The notes under the pieces: generated by a model
Told to the model about the DNA's origin: nothing
What the model saw: the letters and a program-made list of their open reading frames with translations, nothing else
Database searches by the model: none
Shown: positions 6,189 to 17,048 of the stretch, piece after piece
Numbering within the stretch: the stretch's first letter is position 1
Layout: the number at the start of each line of letters is the position of its first letter
Translations under genes and position numbers: made by a program
Sequence record: PP496439.1
Length of the DNA: 64,000 nt
Reading direction: 5' to 3' (one strand)

Positions 6189-9044
6189 TTACATGGTTAC
6201 CAGAGTTACGAAACGGTTGGACATTGCGCGAGCTGTCAACAGAGTTGCCAACAGTCCGGTGTCTGCCCGATACTTCAACACCACCTTGTACACTTTGCCC
6301 GGTGTCAGACCAGTCGCCACGTATTCCCAAGAGCAAGTAGCGGCAGTCGCCGAGTAGCAGCTTCTGTCGTCACTGGCCGCGAGCACAACCGTAGCACCTT
6401 CGGTCATTGTAAAACTGACCCGAGTACCTGCTGCACACTGAGCCCCGAAGGTGACCCTGATAATCCCGGACAGCCCACACGTTATCTGCGCAGTCGGTCC
6501 TACCGTGGTCAGATCCACGAAGCCCACACTGAGAGTAGCCTCTGATGTGTTGAGCACAGCGTTGACCAGCGAGGTACTGTTCGGCGGAATGGCGTAGGTT
6601 CCATCTGCCTTGAGGAACTTGCCGGTGTCAGCAATCTTCGGAGCCGGAACCAGACCATGCTTGCCGTCGGCAGTTGCAGTAGATCCCACCATGTCGGCCA
6701 GCCCGGCCAGTACGTTCGCCATGAAGGTGGAACTGTCCTTGACCGACATCAGGCTACGTCCGTAGTCCGTGGTCAGGAATGCCTTCACCGAACTCGCCAG
6801 TGCATCCCCCATGAGCACAGCGTTCTCAGGAAGGGCCAACGCTGAGATGTTGCTAAGGACGGTAGCCTTGGCTTGATACCCCGACAAATCTGGGGGCGCT
6901 ACGACGGGTTGCCCACCTTCCAGCTCCACCGTGGTTACCTTGATGGCGTTGTCCGGCAGTGTAGGTTCCGTTACCAGCCCATTGGTTTCCGTACCTTTGC
7001 GAAGCTTGAACGTACCCGTCGTGTCCGCGTAGATCAAATCAATCCGTTGCTGACTGGTACCTGCTGCGGCAATCGTGAACGTCACCGAGGTACCGTTGAT
7101 GGTGTAGGTATTTCCTTTTATCCGCCACTGGATCTGAGTGCCACTGCGCAGCGTCAGGGTCACATTCAATCCCGTCTGTGTGACTTCCAGCGGGGTCAGC
7201 AATCCATCTGCCAGCCCGGCTTTCAACGCCAATGACTGCGTGATCGTATCCAGCGCCTGCTGAACCGTTTTGGAGATAGGCTTGTCCGTGTCCGGCGTGT
7301 TGTCTACCTTATCCAGTCCGATGTTTGTCCTCACCTGAACTTTCTGGGCGTCGGCCAAGGTCTGGGCGTTATACCGAACCAGCTCGGTGATTCCCAGATT
7401 GGTGCGTACCTGTGCACGCTGCTCTGCAGTGAACACCTGATCGGCATCGTACCGGAGGAAGTACCCGGTCAGCAGATCACGCAGCGACGGGCTGTCACCT
7501 AACCCCAACATCTTCAGGCCGAAATCGCTGTAAGGTATATTGACGTTGCTACCGTCCAGCTTGAAGCCTAGGATCGTGGCGGGCGTAGTTCCCATCTTGG
7601 CGAGCGCATCCAGCACGTTACTCTTGGCTTGGAACCCCGATAGGTCCGGGGGCGTAACCATCGGTTGTGCACCTTCCACAAAAACCGAGGTGATACGAAT
7701 GGTGCTATCGGGTAAGGCAGGTTCAACGGCAGTTACATTGGACTCCACGCCTTTGAGGACGTGCACAGTGCCGGTCGTATCCCCGTACAGAAGATCATAT
7801 CTCTGCATGCCAACGCCCGACGCGTCCAAGACAAAGGATACTGAAGGTGTAGGGGACGTGTAGGTAACTCCGTCGATCCGCCATTGCAGGTTGCTGCCGT
7901 TGTCACTCGCCAATCCAATCAGCAGGCCATTGCTGCTGGTCGAGATTGGAGTCAGCAATCCATCCTGAAGGTCAGCCTTTCCGTCCAGCAAGGCGAGGAT
8001 GTGGGACAACTGATGCAGGACCGAGGTGGGGATCGGCTTGTCGATGTCCGCTGTATTATCTACCTTGTCCAGGTGCAAGTCAGCCAGTGTTACAGCGCCT
8101 GTCAGCCCATTGATCGATGCGACGACCAGACTGTCCTTGAGCCGGTCCCAGCTTTCCCCGTTGGAGATAATCCAGTCCCCAATCTGCCAGTCCTTGTTGC
8201 CGTCGATACTGGTAGATCCCGCCACCTTGACGATGTAATACAGACCCTTGTTCGCTGTGCTAGCCGCAGGCATGGCTGGCAAGTTCTTATCCGCATCCCA
8301 CGTCCCCGCGTACCGCAGGCTACCGAGAATGGATTCCGGAAGATAGGATAGGTCGATCTTACGATTGCTATCCAGTGGCACCAGCCCACCTGACTGACCC
8401 AGCAGAAGAGCGTCCAACTTGGCGTCCAAAGCCATCTGTTGCGGTAGGGATACAGGCTTCTGAGAATCGGGGATATTGCTTACGTGTTCCAGGCCCACGG
8501 CGGCGGGGGTCAGCACATCTAGCAGACGGTCGCCCCGAATGTACTGCCGGAAGGTACCCAACGGGATCAGGGAGCTGATATCTGGTGCTGTCACCTTACC
8601 CAAGTCCGCGAGGGTTCCGTCGGTGTACATCACCATCAGGTTACCCGCAGCGTTGATCATCGACGTGGAGATACCCCGTCCAGCAGACCCTTTGACCATA
8701 CCCGCGTACTCTTGATCCCCGTTGGCGTAGGTGATCAGCAAGCGACCGTCAGCTGTCACTTGCGTTTTCTGCACCACCTTACCCGTGGTATCACTACCGG
8801 CATCCGAGGTGAGTTGATCCTGTGCTGTTAGGAAGGACTCGTAGCTGGTCATCAAAGACGGACGTGAGCAGATCAACAGATTACGGGTGACCAACTTGGC
8901 GAGTTCTTTCCAGTTCTTGTCAACAACTGCTAAAGACACGTAGTACCACTCGTCTACGCGCATGCGTTTTCCATTGACCTGTACGTCTTGCTTCACATTC
9001 GGAAATTTCCGGAAGCCTACTAATACGTTATCCATTATACGCAC
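6189..9044 (-). CDS. Accessory fibre/virion appendage protein (951 aa) with an internal duplication of about 190 aa
   Basis: Fibre-type motifs (DGRLLITYANG, LDKVDNTxDxDKP twice, GLVPAP) and a beta-rich C-terminus. The N-terminus is paralogous to 9113..11509. Confidence 0.75.
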   Translation of the reverse strand: MRIMDNVLVGFRKFPNVKQDVQVNGKRMRVDEWYYVSLAVVDKNWKELAKLVTRNLLICSRPSLMTSYESFLTAQDQLTSDAGSDTTGKVVQKTQVTADGRLLITYANGDQEYAGMVKGSAGRGISTSMINAAGNLMVMYTDGTLADLGKVTAPDISSLIPLGTFRQYIRGDRLLDVLTPAAVGLEHVSNIPDSQKPVSLPQQMALDAKLDALLLGQSGGLVPLDSNRKIDLSYLPESILGSLRYAGTWDADKNLPAMPAASTANKGLYYIVKVAGSTSIDGNKDWQIGDWIISNGESWDRLKDSLVVASINGLTGAVTLADLHLDKVDNTADIDKPIPTSVLHQLSHILALLDGKADLQDGLLTPISTSSNGLLIGLASDNGSNLQWRIDGVTYTSPTPSVSFVLDASGVGMQRYDLLYGDTTGTVHVLKGVESNVTAVEPALPDSTIRITSVFVEGAQPMVTPPDLSGFQAKSNVLDALAKMGTTPATILGFKLDGSNVNIPYSDFGLKMLGLGDSPSLRDLLTGYFLRYDADQVFTAEQRAQVRTNLGITELVRYNAQTLADAQKVQVRTNIGLDKVDNTPDTDKPISKTVQQALDTITQSLALKAGLADGLLTPLEVTQTGLNVTLTLRSGTQIQWRIKGNTYTINGTSVTFTIAAAGTSQQRIDLIYADTTGTFKLRKGTETNGLVTEPTLPDNAIKVTTVELEGGQPVVAPPDLSGYQAKATVLSNISALALPENAVLMGDALASSVKAFLTTDYGRSLMSVKDSSTFMANVLAGLADMVGSTATADGKHGLVPAPKIADTGKFLKADGTYAIPPNSTSLVNAVLNTSEATLSVGFVDLTTVGPTAQITCGLSGIIRVTFGAQCAAGTRVSFTMTEGATVVLAASDDRSCYSATAATCSWEYVATGLTPGKVYKVVLKYRADTGLLATLLTARAMSNRFVTLVTM

Positions 9045-12956: not shown

Positions 12957-13250
12957 TTACTCTGACGAGACGTTGACGATGGTTACGCCTTCACATTCCT
13001 TCAGGCGATTGATGAACTCCTGAATAGCCTCTGCTGGGTCCACGTAGAATATCTGGCGGGCCACAGCTTCTACGTCGAAGAAGCTAGCGTCGGTATGAAC
13101 TGCCAGACGACTAACGCTTCGTATGGTGGACTGCTGACTACCCGATTCCGTATCTACATCAACGGACCCGGACAGGGTTACCATAAAGATAGTAACCTCC
13201 GTCGATGTTCCCGGCTCAGAATCCACATTTGGATCTTGTGTATCATTCAT
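12957..13250 (-). CDS. Hypothetical protein (97 aa)
   Basis: ORF whose start overlaps the recA stop. Confidence 0.6.
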   Translation of the reverse strand: MNDTQDPNVDSEPGTSTEVTIFMVTLSGSVDVDTESGSQQSTIRSVSRLAVHTDASFFDVEAVARQIFYVDPAEAIQEFINRLKECEGVTIVNVSSE

Positions 13251-14799
13251 CTTCTACTTCCTCTTCTTCCTCATCCAGACCAGCGCCGGACAAGTGGTTG
13301 AAATACAACTCCAGGCCACGGCCCGAAGAAATCTGTGCGGCCAGCACTTCACGGATGTCGAAGTCTTTCACTTCCCATTCTGCCGTCAGCTCCTTGCGGG
13401 CCTTGCCTTTGAACAGGACCAGTTGTTTCAGATCCTCCCACGTCAAGTCCAGCTCAGGGATAGACTTGCTGTCGGCATGCAGCGTGAAAGACTTCATGTT
13501 GCCGGACAGCTGACCGGTCATACGCAGGTAGTACCACGTATCCCAGACCGGATCGAAGCCACGACCTTTACCACTGGCGTCGCTGATCCACAAGCGCTGC
13601 CAGATTTCAAGGTTGTCAACCCCGTACTTGTTCTTGATCGCCTTCATATTGATGAAGCGATAAGTGTCTGTACCGGACGCGCCTACGCTTGGCTCTTCCA
13701 TCGTGGCGCCAGTGGCCGAGATGAAGTCCGGGCAGGCGCGAGGGGTTTGCATGATCCGTGCACCGGTGGCGTGTTTGATCGCCATGCCGCCAGGTTCATA
13801 GTTCGGGTTACCCATTCGCATGCCCGGATTCTGACGGATCTGGTTGATCGACACCACGGTCGCCATTTTCTTCCGCAGTCGGCCCCACACCTTCTTGATG
13901 TGCTTGGAGTGCATACGTGCATCCAGAGCCATACCCCGGCTACCGTCACCGTCTTCCCCTTCGTCTTCCTCGGTGGTCATCGAGGCAATGGAGTCGAGCA
14001 GGATCAGACACTGCATCATGCCGCCGTTGGGCGACTTCATCCGCAGCTTGCCTTTGTAGACGGTGTACTTGCCCTTGAACTTGCTCATGTTCTCTTTGGT
14101 GCGGTCATACAGCAGATACCACTCGCCGTTGATATGCACCTTGTCGGGCAGCTTTTTCAGGATCGACGACATCACCTTGTAGAACTTCTCGCCCGACGAT
14201 TCGTTGTAGTAACGAACGCGAGGTGGGACTACGTAGTTGCCTTTATCGTCCTTCACGCCGAACATACGCTTCATGCTGATCTTGATGCCTTGGGCTTCGA
14301 GCATGTTGACGATGTAGTCTTCGGCACCGGTGTTCTCATAGTCCCACCAAAAGGACATTGGAACGCCAGCCAAACAGATGGAACCCAACCACGACATCAG
14401 GTTGGTGGACTTGCCCGAACCTTCCGGCCCCGAGAAGTTATACCAGCCACCGGGATAGATACCACCCGCCAGCATCAGGTCGGTGCACAGCATCCCTGTG
14501 GACACTCGCCCTTCCCGGAGGATCTCCAAGTCCGATACACCTTGGACGATGTTGAAGTGTTCCTCCACCTCGTCGATCATGGCAGTGACGCCCATCATCT
14601 CAAGGATTTCGTCTACCATGTCTTCGCGAGACTTGGGTGGCGCTTCAACCTTTGCAGCGGCTGCTTTGTTGGCCCCACGCTTCGCGGGTACCTTGGCGTC
14701 CTCGATCAGCTTTTCCGCAAGTGCGCTGACCTTTTTCTTGGTTGCTACCGTCGCAGTCTTGACGGGTTTAGCTTTAGCTCTGGTAGTGGCTGCTGCCAT
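13243..14799 (-). CDS. recA: RecA/UvsX-like recombinase
   Basis: VSTGMLCTDLMLAGG, Walker A SGPEGSGKST, Walker B ILLDSIASM, INQIRQNPG, EPGGMAIKHATGARI. Ala/Lys-rich N-terminal extension and acidic C-tail. Confidence 0.9.
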   Translation of the reverse strand: MAAATTRAKAKPVKTATVATKKKVSALAEKLIEDAKVPAKRGANKAAAAKVEAPPKSREDMVDEILEMMGVTAMIDEVEEHFNIVQGVSDLEILREGRVSTGMLCTDLMLAGGIYPGGWYNFSGPEGSGKSTNLMSWLGSICLAGVPMSFWWDYENTGAEDYIVNMLEAQGIKISMKRMFGVKDDKGNYVVPPRVRYYNESSGEKFYKVMSSILKKLPDKVHINGEWYLLYDRTKENMSKFKGKYTVYKGKLRMKSPNGGMMQCLILLDSIASMTTEEDEGEDGDGSRGMALDARMHSKHIKKVWGRLRKKMATVVSINQIRQNPGMRMGNPNYEPGGMAIKHATGARIMQTPRACPDFISATGATMEEPSVGASGTDTYRFINMKAIKNKYGVDNLEIWQRLWISDASGKGRGFDPVWDTWYYLRMTGQLSGNMKSFTLHADSKSIPELDLTWEDLKQLVLFKGKARKELTAEWEVKDFDIREVLAAQISSGRGLELYFNHLSGAGLDEEEEEVEDE

Positions 14800-14822
14800 G
14801 GAGATGTACCTGCGTCGTAAAT

Positions 14823-14864
14823 AAAAAATGGGGCACCGACCAGCGAACCGGCAGATGCCCCATT
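14823..14864 (-). terminator. Intrinsic terminator downstream of the readthrough extension
   Basis: AATGGGGCA/TGCCCCATT stem, 20-nt structured loop, then a U tract. Confidence 0.7.
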
Positions 14865-14880: not shown

Positions 14881-15057
14881 TCACTTACGTGACTTGCGAC
14901 GCTTCGCTTTGACCGTACTCACCGCCTTGAAGCCGGGCTTATTGTAGTCCGGTCTGGCATCGGCGGCGAGGTTGAACAACCCCCCGCTGCTCGGGTCAAA
15001 GCCTTTGGCGGATCGGCCCTTCGGCTTACCGCCGCCGGACTTACCGCCGGCCTGCAG
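14881..15057 (-). other. In-frame 58-codon basic extension after the TGA of the acidic protein (stop-readthrough candidate)
   Basis: LQAGGKSGGGKPKGRSAKGFDPSSGGLFNLAADARPDYNKPGFKAVSTVKAKRRKSRK then TGA at 14881-14883. No ATG in this frame; codons AAG/GGC/GCC match the upstream gene. Confidence 0.6.
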
Positions 15058-15861
15058 TCACTCGATGTCGAGTTCGATCTTCAGCTTTTTGGCCGCTTTG
15101 ACGATCTTGTCCTTGCCCGCTTCGACAACTTTCTCGACGATGGCGTCGGTGTCGTCCTTGCGGCCGATGGTGATCTTCAGTGCTTTGGCCAGCGACTTCA
15201 GTTCGTCTTCGTCCAGCTCTTCGAGGGCGTCTTGGAGTTCTTCTTCCTCCTCTTCTTCCTCCTCGTTTTCTTCTTCCTCTTCTTCGCCGTCGCCCAGTTC
15301 GATTTCCAGCTCTTCAGCTGCGTCACGAACGTCGTCTTCGTCTTCTTCGAGGATCAGCGCGATGATCGCGTCTTCGTCGTCTTTCTTGCCGACTTTGATT
15401 TCCAGCTCTTTGGCCAGCGCTTTGAGGTCTTTCAGGGAAAGTTCACCGAGTTCGGCTTCGAGGTCGCCTTCCTCTTTTTCGTCTTCTTCCTCCTCCTCCT
15501 CCTCGTTTTCTTCCTCTTCCTCTTCGGATTCCTCCAGTTCGAGGTCGATGTCCAACGCGTCGGCCGCGTCTTCGATGTCCGACTGGGACGCCGCTTCGGC
15601 CAGAGCTTCGGCCATGGCTTCTTCGTCAGCGCCCTTGGCGAACTTGACCTTCAGCTTCTTGCCCAGCTGCTTCAGCTCGTCTTCGTCCAGATCGGCCAGC
15701 GCTTCGATCAGTGCTTCCTTGTCGTCGCCCTTTTCACCGCCGCCTTCTTCGTCCAGCTCTTCCGCCAGTTCAGCGATTTCGGCGAATGCTGCCTTGGCCT
15801 TTTTGTCCTTGGTCGCTTCTGCTGCTGCTTCGGCCAGTTCGATGATTTTTTCAACAGACAT
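15058..15861 (-). CDS. Highly acidic protein (about 40% D+E) with three helical repeats and poly-Glu spacers
   Basis: Repeats LDEDELKQLGKKLKVK / LSLKDLKALAKELEIK / LDEDELKSLAKALKIT (Rho-N/HeH-like). RBS AAAGAGG. Confidence 0.85.
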   Translation of the reverse strand: MSVEKIIELAEAAAEATKDKKAKAAFAEIAELAEELDEEGGGEKGDDKEALIEALADLDEDELKQLGKKLKVKFAKGADEEAMAEALAEAASQSDIEDAADALDIDLELEESEEEEEENEEEEEEEDEKEEGDLEAELGELSLKDLKALAKELEIKVGKKDDEDAIIALILEEDEDDVRDAAEELEIELGDGEEEEEENEEEEEEEEELQDALEELDEDELKSLAKALKITIGRKDDTDAIVEKVVEAGKDKIVKAAKKLKIELDIE

Positions 15862-15959
15862 GGTACATCCTCTTTACGGGTAGGGTGCCAACTAAGGCTC
15901 TTTAATCAACGGGGCGCCGTTTGGCTCACCCCGTTATACGAATGATTTACAGCGGTCTT

Positions 15960-17048
15960 TCAGCGACGACTTGAACGCGAGGATCTTGTCGACGTTTTCT
16001 CTTTGTCGCGGCTGGTACGGCTGCTGCGTTCCGACCGGCTCGACGTTGATTTACCGGACTTCTCCGGCTTATCAGCTTTGACCTTGGTTTTCTCGCGGCG
16101 GGAAGTACGCTCGGGCTTCTCTTCACGGCTGCTGCTACGCTTGCTGCCTCGCAGTGGACGATCCGATTCACGCTTTCGCTTGCTGCCCCGGTCGAGATCC
16201 TTACCGGCCTTCTCTTCCTCTTCCTCGACTTCCTCGGCATCCGGAGCCTTGGATTCCAAACTTGCCACTTCCTTTACAGCATCTGCGTAGGACATTGGCT
16301 GGTCGAGGTTGCCGAGGATGTCCCATTGCAGATACTTCTGCTCGGTACGGGACAGCGGAGTATGGCCTGTGCTGGAATCCAGCTGCACGTCATACATGTC
16401 CGACGCCGACTTCGCGTCTTTATCGTAGGACACCAGAATGTCACGACCGAACTCGGGATCACCCAGCGGCATGATCTGCACGCCCTGCTTGGTTTTCACC
16501 TTGTTGGTGTCTTCCAGCTTCTTGATCTTGCCAGCGATACGGTCGGTAACCCGCATGACGCGAACCGGGGTCCACGAGGCGCTGTTGATGTTGTCCACGA
16601 AGCCGGTCTTCTTCTCGTTGGCCGAGTGCTCGGGGACACGCTTCGGCTCGCTGTCTTGCAGTTCCCGCACGATGACCGGTACGTAGTAGTACTTCTTGGT
16701 CTGCTTGGGATTGCTGATCTCAGCGAACGGGCAGTCGATGGTGGTGTCGAAGGTATCCGCGTCCCGGTCGAAGTTCAACGGGGTATGCGAGATATCGAAC
16801 TCACCCTTCGGCGTAACGATCTTGATCGAGTACACCACATCTGGAATCGGATCACCGACGATACGCACAGCGATGAAAGCACCACCTGGCGGGTATTCGA
16901 TCATCTTCACTTTCTTGTTGAAGTACACCCGCTTGCCGCCGGTCTGGCCAGCATTGGTCGCACCGAAACCTTTACGAGCTGGGGCAGCACCAACGCTACC
17001 ACCTCCGCCAGTACGGCTACGACCGGTTCTTGCACTGTCACGTGCCAT
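15960..17048 (-). CDS. Putative gp32-like single-stranded DNA-binding protein
   Basis: Position next to recA. Core resembles the gp32-like family (KKYYYVPVIVR, VRVMRV, DPEFGRDILVSY, MYDVQ). Termini are R/G- and R/S-rich. Confidence 0.6.
   Translation of the reverse strand: MARDSARTGRSRTGGGGSVGAAPARKGFGATNAGQTGGKRVYFNKKVKMIEYPPGGAFIAVRIVGDPIPDVVYSIKIVTPKGEFDISHTPLNFDRDADTFDTTIDCPFAEISNPKQTKKYYYVPVIVRELQDSEPKRVPEHSANEKKTGFVDNINSASWTPVRVMRVTDRIAGKIKKLEDTNKVKTKQGVQIMPLGDPEFGRDILVSYDKDAKSASDMYDVQLDSSTGHTPLSRTEQKYLQWDILGNLDQPMSYADAVKEVASLESKAPDAEEVEEEEEKAGKDLDRGSKRKRESDRPLRGSKRSSSREEKPERTSRREKTKVKADKPEKSGKSTSSRSERSSRTSRDKEKTSTRSSRSSRR

Follow-up and report, generated by a model that had tools for sequence, protein, structure and literature searches.

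Candidate readthrough of a conserved UGA codon at the end of an acidic-protein gene in the SSB-UvsX module of Pseudomonas phage Amme-1 and distant phage lineages

Why would a large DNA phage keep a reading frame open, and under selection, behind the stop codon of one of its genes? RNA viruses and eukaryotes offer many well-studied cases of functional stop-codon readthrough, and in tailed phages with double-stranded DNA (dsDNA) minor C-terminally extended isoforms of the tail assembly chaperone (G/GT) and of the T7 capsid protein (10A/10B) are made by frameshifting. For functional readthrough in phages and bacteria, the A1 protein of phage Q-beta, listed at 5% (PMC7026636, Table 1), and one Bacillus enzyme are the only entries, the levansucrase SacB of Bacillus subtilis being the sole bacterial example in the functional-readthrough table (PMC7026636). 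The subject of the present analysis is Amme1_00099, an acidic-protein gene of Pseudomonas phage vB_PpuM-Amme-1 (hereafter Amme-1) that closes in a UGA, with 58 further codons free of stops behind it in the same frame. It lies in a 64,000-nucleotide stretch of the Amme-1 genome (the window; PP496439.1, 100% identity, the window position being the record position minus 62000), between the gene for a single-strand DNA-binding protein (SSB) and that for a UvsX-like recombinase. Programmed, site-specific readthrough of this UGA, which would make a minor isoform of 326 amino acids (aa), is in our judgement the likely explanation. We show here, by sequence comparison, that five lineages with saturated synonymous sites have all kept the UGA and, in the same frame, an extension that is constrained as protein.

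The locus resembles Q-beta A1 in that a natural UGA stands at the end of a gene and is followed by an in-frame C-terminal extension, which has no start of its own in Q-beta and no canonical start ahead of its core in Amme-1, and in that the extended form would be a minor isoform, which in Q-beta is made in a set ratio. Unlike Q-beta, a small single-stranded RNA phage in which A1 is a virion protein, Amme-1 is a dsDNA myovirus of ~200 kb, and the protein concerned is acidic, probably non-structural, and encoded in an SSB-UvsX module. The extension here is also short (41-79 codons over the five lineages) and basic, and no sequence relationship to A1 was found.

The reading frame behind the UGA

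On the minus strand, Amme1_00099 (15058..15861, TGA included) is a 267-codon open reading frame (ORF), 15861-15061, that closes in the context GAG TGA CTG; the TGA at 15060-15058 is the candidate leaky stop (GAG-UGA-CUG in the mRNA). Past it the frame is open for 58 codons (15057-14884), up to a second TGA at 14883-14881, and the predicted isoforms have lengths of 267 and 326 aa. The extension, with a net charge of +12 and an isoelectric point (pI) of 11.2, comprises a Gly/Lys/Ser linker, a conserved core (extension residues 20-41, 14935..15000), which is the best-conserved block in the lineage alignments, and a Lys/Arg-rich C-terminal tail (residues 50-58, 14884..14910) that ends KAKRRKSRK. 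The intrinsic terminator (14821..14864, minus strand) has a perfect 9-bp inverted repeat (14856-14864 / 14827-14835) as its G+C-rich stem, followed by a T-run, and the ATG of UvsX is 22 nt beyond it. The coordinates of both stops and of the 58-codon frame, together with the isoform lengths and the C-terminal sequence, were re-derived and agree with the original prediction, which had also placed the terminator, correctly, after the second stop and not the first.

How much of this could be chance? The open frame on its own is weak evidence and not significant: 13.6-13.8% of dinucleotide shuffles of the extension stretch are open as well, and long open stretches past a stop are common in the genome, mostly because the next gene lies in the same frame. 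Codon usage is strong evidence that the extension is coding-like. It scores 0.265 bits/codon, well within the range of this phage's genes (mean 0.306, standard deviation (sd) 0.175), and none of the 2,760 open shuffles reaches this value; scores are negative in each of the other five frames, and both halves of the extension are gene-like (0.22 and 0.30 bits/codon), which bears out the codon bias that had been pointed out from the letters. The 12 other post-stop open stretches in the genome (at least 30 codons, outside called ORFs) mostly have a negative codon-usage score. Open windows in non-coding frames inside genes, 20% of which reach the observed value, are a poor null for this purpose, since the true frame lends them its periodicity. 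Elsewhere TGA serves as a normal terminator, as had been claimed for the window; in the genome it closes 90 of the 216 long ORFs (42%), 29 of them in the context TGA-C.

As to the lack of an ATG and of a well-spaced ribosome-binding site, part of the same prediction, no in-frame ATG, GTG or TTG precedes the core in the Amme-1 extension. The sole start-like codon ahead of the core is a CTG, extension codon 1, without Shine-Dalgarno pairing (-1.8 kcal/mol); for the SSB and acidic genes, pairing at the true start codons reaches -6.0 kcal/mol. A scan for sigma-70 promoters found none inside the extension.

Does the arrangement exist outside the immediate relatives of Amme-1? Five lineages were compared: the Amme-1 group, the Vibrio phages GR7B and GR11A, and the metagenomic contigs L021 and L026. 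A tblastn search of phage genomes with the extension gave only matches of E ~8-9, in GR7B and GR11A. These gained meaning through synteny, since both phages have in order a sigma-like gene, an SSB-like gene, a gene for an acidic repeat protein, an unannotated gap and recA, and the weak match falls in the gap before recA. In RecA/UvsX they share 49% identity with Amme-1, within a range of 49-53% over the four distant lineages. In GR7B and GR11A the acidic gene closes in TGA and the same frame goes on for 44 and 50 codons, respectively, up to a double stop, TAA TAA, behind which come a hairpin and its T-run. L021 and L026 were both found via their UvsX homologues (53% identical, and 49% identical with an intein, respectively); L021 has TGA, 79 codons, TAA and a terminator, and L026 has TGA, 41 codons, TAA and a terminator. 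UvsX comes after the terminator in all four distant lineages, and the hairpin and T-run are placed as in Amme-1.

Alignment of the five extensions starts with the codons right behind the TGA, and all follow one plan, with a Gly/Lys/Ser-rich start, the core, and a Lys/Arg-rich end that is basic in 5/5 lineages; the net charge of the tail is +6 to +12 throughout. In the core, for example, Amme-1 extension residues 20-41, FDPSSGGLFNLAADARPDYNKP, are aligned with NYNPSSGGFFNEAPDALEDGNRP of GR7B. Identity between Amme-1 and GR7B is 55% in the extension, against 38% in the body of the acidic protein. The chance of an open extension, calculated for each lineage, is 0.136, 0.016, 0.131, 0.134 and 0.079.

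Selection was gauged by comparing GR7B with GR11A. In the extension, synonymous sites are saturated, with a synonymous divergence (dS) of 1.43 and a nonsynonymous divergence (dN) of 0.23 (dN/dS ~0.16), and differences are distributed over the three codon positions as 11/7/21 (Fisher p = 1.6e-5). The acidic gene of the same pair has comparable values (dS 1.60, dN 0.31), recA has dS 1.85 and dN 0.13, and the other two frames of the extension alignment show no excess of synonymous change. The extension frame is therefore both translated and under selection as protein. The original prediction had proposed a search of related phages as its check, and a conserved TGA, a conserved downstream frame and a dN/dS below 1 were indeed found, reaching well past the nine near-identical Pseudomonas phages.

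In these nine phages, which were independently isolated and sequenced, the TGA never varies, no stop interrupts the frame and there are no indels in the extension (9/9), and the core is invariant at the nucleotide level save for two third-position changes. Over the 174 extension positions Amme-1 and Peetri show 10 differences, while the rate at four-fold degenerate sites of the neighbouring genes is 16% (binomial P = 2e-5); this low divergence indicates that the extension has been constrained while standing behind the TGA.

The type of stop codon also goes with the presence of a tail. The junction stop is TGA in 5/5 lineages with the extension (the nine Pseudomonas phages, GR7B, GR11A, L021 and L026), whereas TAA ends the acidic gene in 6/6 remoter loci in which an acidic protein without a tail is encoded upstream of UvsX. 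UvsX in these six loci, five of which are distinct, is up to 47% identical, or 39-40% in those that came from a profile search, and by our own count the exact probability of 5/5 against 0/6 is 1/462. The UvsX profile search yielded only relatives of 39-40% identity, all without the extension. The four distant relatives are richer in A+T, and in them TGA closes only 3 of 26 other ORFs in the same loci; their extensions themselves end in TAA. A junction TGA where there is a tail and a TAA where there is none could be used as a screening rule.

Readthrough weighed against other explanations

In programmed readthrough, the explanation that we favour, most ribosomes would stop at the UGA (15060-15058) and release the 267-aa acidic protein, and a minority would decode it by a near-cognate tRNA and go on for 58 codons. 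Going by UGA leakage in bacteria generally, this would most likely be tRNA-Trp. The product would be the 326-aa isoform, in which the acidic protein is followed by a flexible Gly/Lys/Ser linker, the conserved 22-residue core and the Lys/Arg tail, and its translation would end at the second stop, just ahead of the operon's intrinsic terminator. The share of this isoform can be expected to be a few per cent or less, and in the Pseudomonas group a stable RNA fold that begins 9 nt past the UGA would raise the rate. The tail would dock a fraction of the acidic protein on nucleic acid or on the SSB/UvsX machinery encoded by the flanking genes. Readthrough is preferred to a separate gene because the extension is in frame in 5/5 lineages despite its changes in length, because it has no conserved start, and because of the contrast in stop type. 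A wider proposal is that a clade of ~200-kb myoviruses, with Pseudomonas, Vibrio and uncultured hosts, has kept, across deep divergence, a dedicated UGA-readthrough switch in its recombination module, by which a set, small fraction of an acidic helical-repeat protein would gain a conserved docking core and a DNA-binding Lys/Arg tail and would regulate or localise SSB/UvsX filament assembly, with no need of an RNA stimulator other than the UGA; we hold this to be an evenly balanced matter.

An RNA domain that is predicted to fold strongly (14881..15063, minus strand) coincides with the Amme-1 extension, with a minimum free energy of -85.6 kcal/mol and z = -4.5 (z = -3.7 in a separate run of 200 shuffles); in 180 genome windows of the same size, z has a mean of -0.23, an sd of 1.1 and a minimum of -3.3. 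The first compact stem-loop, 15007-15048, starts 9 nt past the UGA, and a 9-bp perfect inverted repeat (14906-14914 / 14994-15002) lies within the domain. As a side observation, 4 of the 10 extension differences between Amme-1 and Peetri (L002) fall on both arms of the one hairpin at 15007-15048, where Peetri keeps a hairpin. One pair changes from C-G to U-A, and the Peetri differences favour an alternative 6-bp helix in the same place, within a set of only nine near-identical sequences.

Several observations weigh against readthrough. The base after the UGA (+4) is not constant: the Pseudomonas group has C, three of the relatives have A and the fourth has G. The UGA-C context on which the original prediction leaned stands for the Pseudomonas group and is not kept in the four distant lineages (A, A, A, G). 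The strong fold is likewise confined to the Pseudomonas group, the relatives having z values of -0.8 to -2.0. Given the variable +4 base and the group-specific fold, no shared stimulatory signal beyond the UGA was found; in readthrough genes a shared stimulatory context, whether the +4 base or a 3' RNA structure, is common, not obligatory. In GR11A, codon 11 of the extension is an in-frame ATG whose Shine-Dalgarno pairing is moderate (-4.9 kcal/mol), and in this phage the tail could also be made separately, in addition. In the Pseudomonas group the extension shows few substitutions and a dN/dS of 0.47 (the Amme-1/Peetri pair), and its four-fold degenerate sites are unusually conserved, 1/30 differing against 94/572 in neighbouring genes, which suggests constraint at the nucleotide (RNA) level on top of the coding constraint. 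The source paper on these phages makes no mention of an extended protein (PMC7616413).

Could the tail be a protein of its own? A small basic protein of about 36-58 aa might have a start site to itself, in part a non-canonical one, or be translated by termination coupling at the UGA. Small genes often go unannotated, and dN/dS identifies a translated frame, not a start site; besides the ATG of GR11A (-4.9 kcal/mol), GR7B offers a GTG with weak Shine-Dalgarno pairing (-4.0 kcal/mol). The starts are, however, a poor fit to this explanation. Ahead of the core, neither Amme-1 nor L026 has an ATG, GTG or TTG, the only candidate in L021 is a TTG without a Shine-Dalgarno sequence, and the candidates differ among lineages in type and in alignment position, no conserved start with a ribosome-binding site being found; the residues upstream of these non-homologous candidates still align. 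A separate protein would need neither to stay in frame with the acidic gene in 5/5 lineages, at lengths of 41-79 codons, nor to be preceded by TGA in 5/5 where TAA is found in 6/6 tail-less loci. We consider it unlikely, if the least unlikely of the alternatives. We are more doubtful still that the Amme-1 stretch is mainly a structured RNA, a 3'-untranslated domain acting in mRNA stability, processing, or the control of termination or of UvsX, whose coding look is a relic with negligible translation. Its fold lies beyond all 180 control windows, its four-fold degenerate sites are more conserved than those of the neighbouring genes, and the hairpin that bears 4 of the 10 Peetri differences on its arms is kept, all of which speaks for such an RNA. 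The relatives nevertheless have a homologous tail without a comparable fold and yet show clear purifying selection at the protein level, and a relic would not retain frame, TGA and residues across lineages saturated at synonymous sites. Rfam gave no family match (the best, the sucA motif, reached 17.3 bits against a gathering score of 40, E = 1.8), and structured RNA and coding can in any case coexist.

That the stop is specifically UGA in five lineages would also suit a dedicated decoding of this codon, as selenocysteine, by a phage suppressor tRNA or in a reassigned code. Searches gave little room for this. Families of the selenocysteine insertion sequence (SECIS) had no match even at E up to 10, no hairpin just after the UGA is conserved across lineages (the first 75 nt in L026 have z = +0.97), and ARAGORN found no suppressor tRNA in the genome, where TGA ends 42% of the long ORFs; we regard dedicated decoding as highly improbable. 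The only ARAGORN call was a tRNA-Gly(gcc), which lies inside the coding sequence Amme1_00006 (7005-9026), at L014 8184-8261 (PP496439.1, outside the window). The remaining explanation, and one that the original prediction had itself named, is that the TGA arose by recent nonsense mutation, or is a sequencing error, and truncates a longer protein. The gene-like codon usage of the tail would be expected from it. The same TGA is, however, present in nine separately sequenced genomes and four distant lineages, and purifying selection on the tail persists behind it; by the number and depth of the lineages that share the TGA, both error and recent mutation are excluded.

Genomic setting, the acidic protein and possible function

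Amme-1 is one of nine ~200-kb myoviruses that were all isolated on P. putida, eight of which are taken in by jumbo cluster G3 (PMC7616413). The order on the minus strand is a sigma factor gene, two hypothetical genes, the SSB gene (15960..17048; annotation, and phrog_15004 at E = 5e-33), Amme1_00099, a 258-nt unannotated gap and the UvsX-like recombinase gene (13243..14799; annotation, and family and homology searches). Amme1_00099 is annotated as 'hypothetical protein' in GenBank, and the extension is annotated in none of the records, 11 deposited genomes leaving the tail unannotated. The other strand carries an antisense ORF of 303 aa (window 14972-15883, plus) that exceeds the real 267-aa gene in length and is an artefact of the GAA/GAG-rich sequence; gene calling that is greedy for length chooses the wrong strand here. 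Several UvsX homologues of the group have intein or homing-endonuclease domains (L026 1281-3962; P0010, P0013, P0016), and these get split or lengthened by gene callers. Elsewhere in Amme-1, QueC-like, QueE-like and GTP cyclohydrolase genes are annotated (PP496439.1 158682-161010 and 193988-197668, outside the window), and in the Vibrio relatives a gene with a TGT domain adjoins the sigma/SSB/UvsX module (L019 1-187, L020 1-260), a gene set that we take to be typical of 7-deazaguanine DNA modification.

What kind of protein would carry the tail? The 267-aa protein has 107 Asp+Glu and a pI of 4.05, and three or four predicted helix-loop-helix modules are set between poly-Glu linkers. The original prediction had called it purely acidic; its strongly acidic character stands, and the wording is loose in view of its 33 Lys+Arg. 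A single-sequence AlphaFold model is all-helical, at low confidence (mean pLDDT 62). The only Pfam matches point, below threshold, to the SAP / helix-extension-helix type of DNA-binding repeat protein (Fan1_SAP, 14.9 bits against 27); no family reaches a curated threshold, and the protein has no PHROG relative and no PDB sequence relative. For the tail, Pfam, PHROGs, PDB sequence and HMMER searches detected no relative, and the extension peptide found nothing in IMG/VR or in metagenome contigs; Amme-1 UvsX alone likewise found nothing in IMG/VR. Two HMMER matches to the extension, P0002 and P0003, are repeat or low-complexity proteins and were judged to be chance motif matches, and DNA matches in Xanthomonas and Erwinia phages were set aside as low-complexity poly-Glu sequence in unrelated contexts. 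The core may resemble the short Phe/Ala motif by which BRC repeats and Rad51/RadA protomers dock on the recombinase core, a likeness given no weight here.

P0001, which alone in the protein database is distantly related to the acidic protein, stands in another context and has no homologous tail. P0001 (L012 6001-7161, JGI contig Ga0502774_0000167; L013) also ends in TGA, with the next called gene in the same frame. That gene starts with GTG six codons on, and its 108-aa product, with a Cys-rich C-terminus, is unrelated to the Amme-1 tail. The junction could be a coincidence (1 in 3) or another of the same kind. In still remoter relatives (L025 1628-2947, L030; L029, L031), the place upstream of UvsX is taken by alternating acidic and basic repeat proteins. 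One type of these ends in a stretch similar to the C-terminal tip of bacterial SSB, and another has a constitutive Lys/Arg tail with no stop in between, which suggests that the C-terminal end is the functionally variable part of the acidic repeat-protein family.

The neighbouring SSB offers a hint as to function. Its C-terminal 60 residues (window 15963-16142, minus) are basic and Ser/Thr-rich, with 23 Lys+Arg, 9 Asp+Glu and 23 Ser+Thr, whereas T4 gp32 is acidic in its C-terminal region. Here as in the presynaptic system of T4, an acidic segment would be expected to influence how the proteins that bind single-stranded DNA interact. The acidic function may have shifted, in Amme-1, from the SSB to a separate protein encoded next to it. 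As a working model we infer that the acidic protein would interact electrostatically with the SSB/UvsX machinery, and that the tailed minor isoform would be anchored to nucleic acid or to a partner via its core and Lys/Arg tail. The charge switch put forward in the original prediction is likewise hypothetical.

Relation to known recoding and recombination systems

If readthrough operates here, then a leaky UGA would serve as a stoichiometry device in large DNA phages too, beside the known frameshifts, and selected, conserved readthrough would exist in dsDNA phages outside morphogenesis genes. Isoforms of this kind escape annotation pipelines that end every gene at its first stop. The locus also points to an undescribed accessory protein of SSB/UvsX, the activity of which may depend on a minor tailed isoform. 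Full-text literature searches returned no description of the Amme-1 case or of recoding in these phages.

The frameshifts of tailed dsDNA phages, in the tail assembly chaperone G/GT and the T7 capsid 10A/10B (PMC5009743), are similar in that an extended minor isoform would be made from one mRNA by recoding. They shift at a slippery site in morphogenesis genes, whereas in Amme-1 the extension lies in the same frame behind a stop, there is no slippery site, and the gene is not a morphogenesis gene. SacB, as a secreted enzyme of a cell, is unrelated to the Amme-1 case in sequence and context. In eukaryotic viruses, some readthrough signals include an RNA structure that lies a few nucleotides 3' of the stop (PMC7026636, citing Firth et al. 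2011). The Amme-1 stem-loop 9 nt past the UGA and its stable fold are reminiscent of these, and a C in the +4 position, as in the Amme-1 group, is associated with leaky UGA (PMC7026636). On the other side, neither the structure nor the +4 C is kept in the four distant lineages, and the translation system is bacterial.

The order of genes, SSB and then the UvsX recombinase, is reminiscent of the gp32/UvsX/UvsY system of T4. Unlike in T4, the acidic part is a separate protein in Amme-1, and the last 60 residues of the SSB are basic and Ser/Thr-rich. As a type of recoding, stop-codon readthrough is known; its proposed setting here, in the recombination module of a large dsDNA phage, is unusual, and the conservation is unusually deep.

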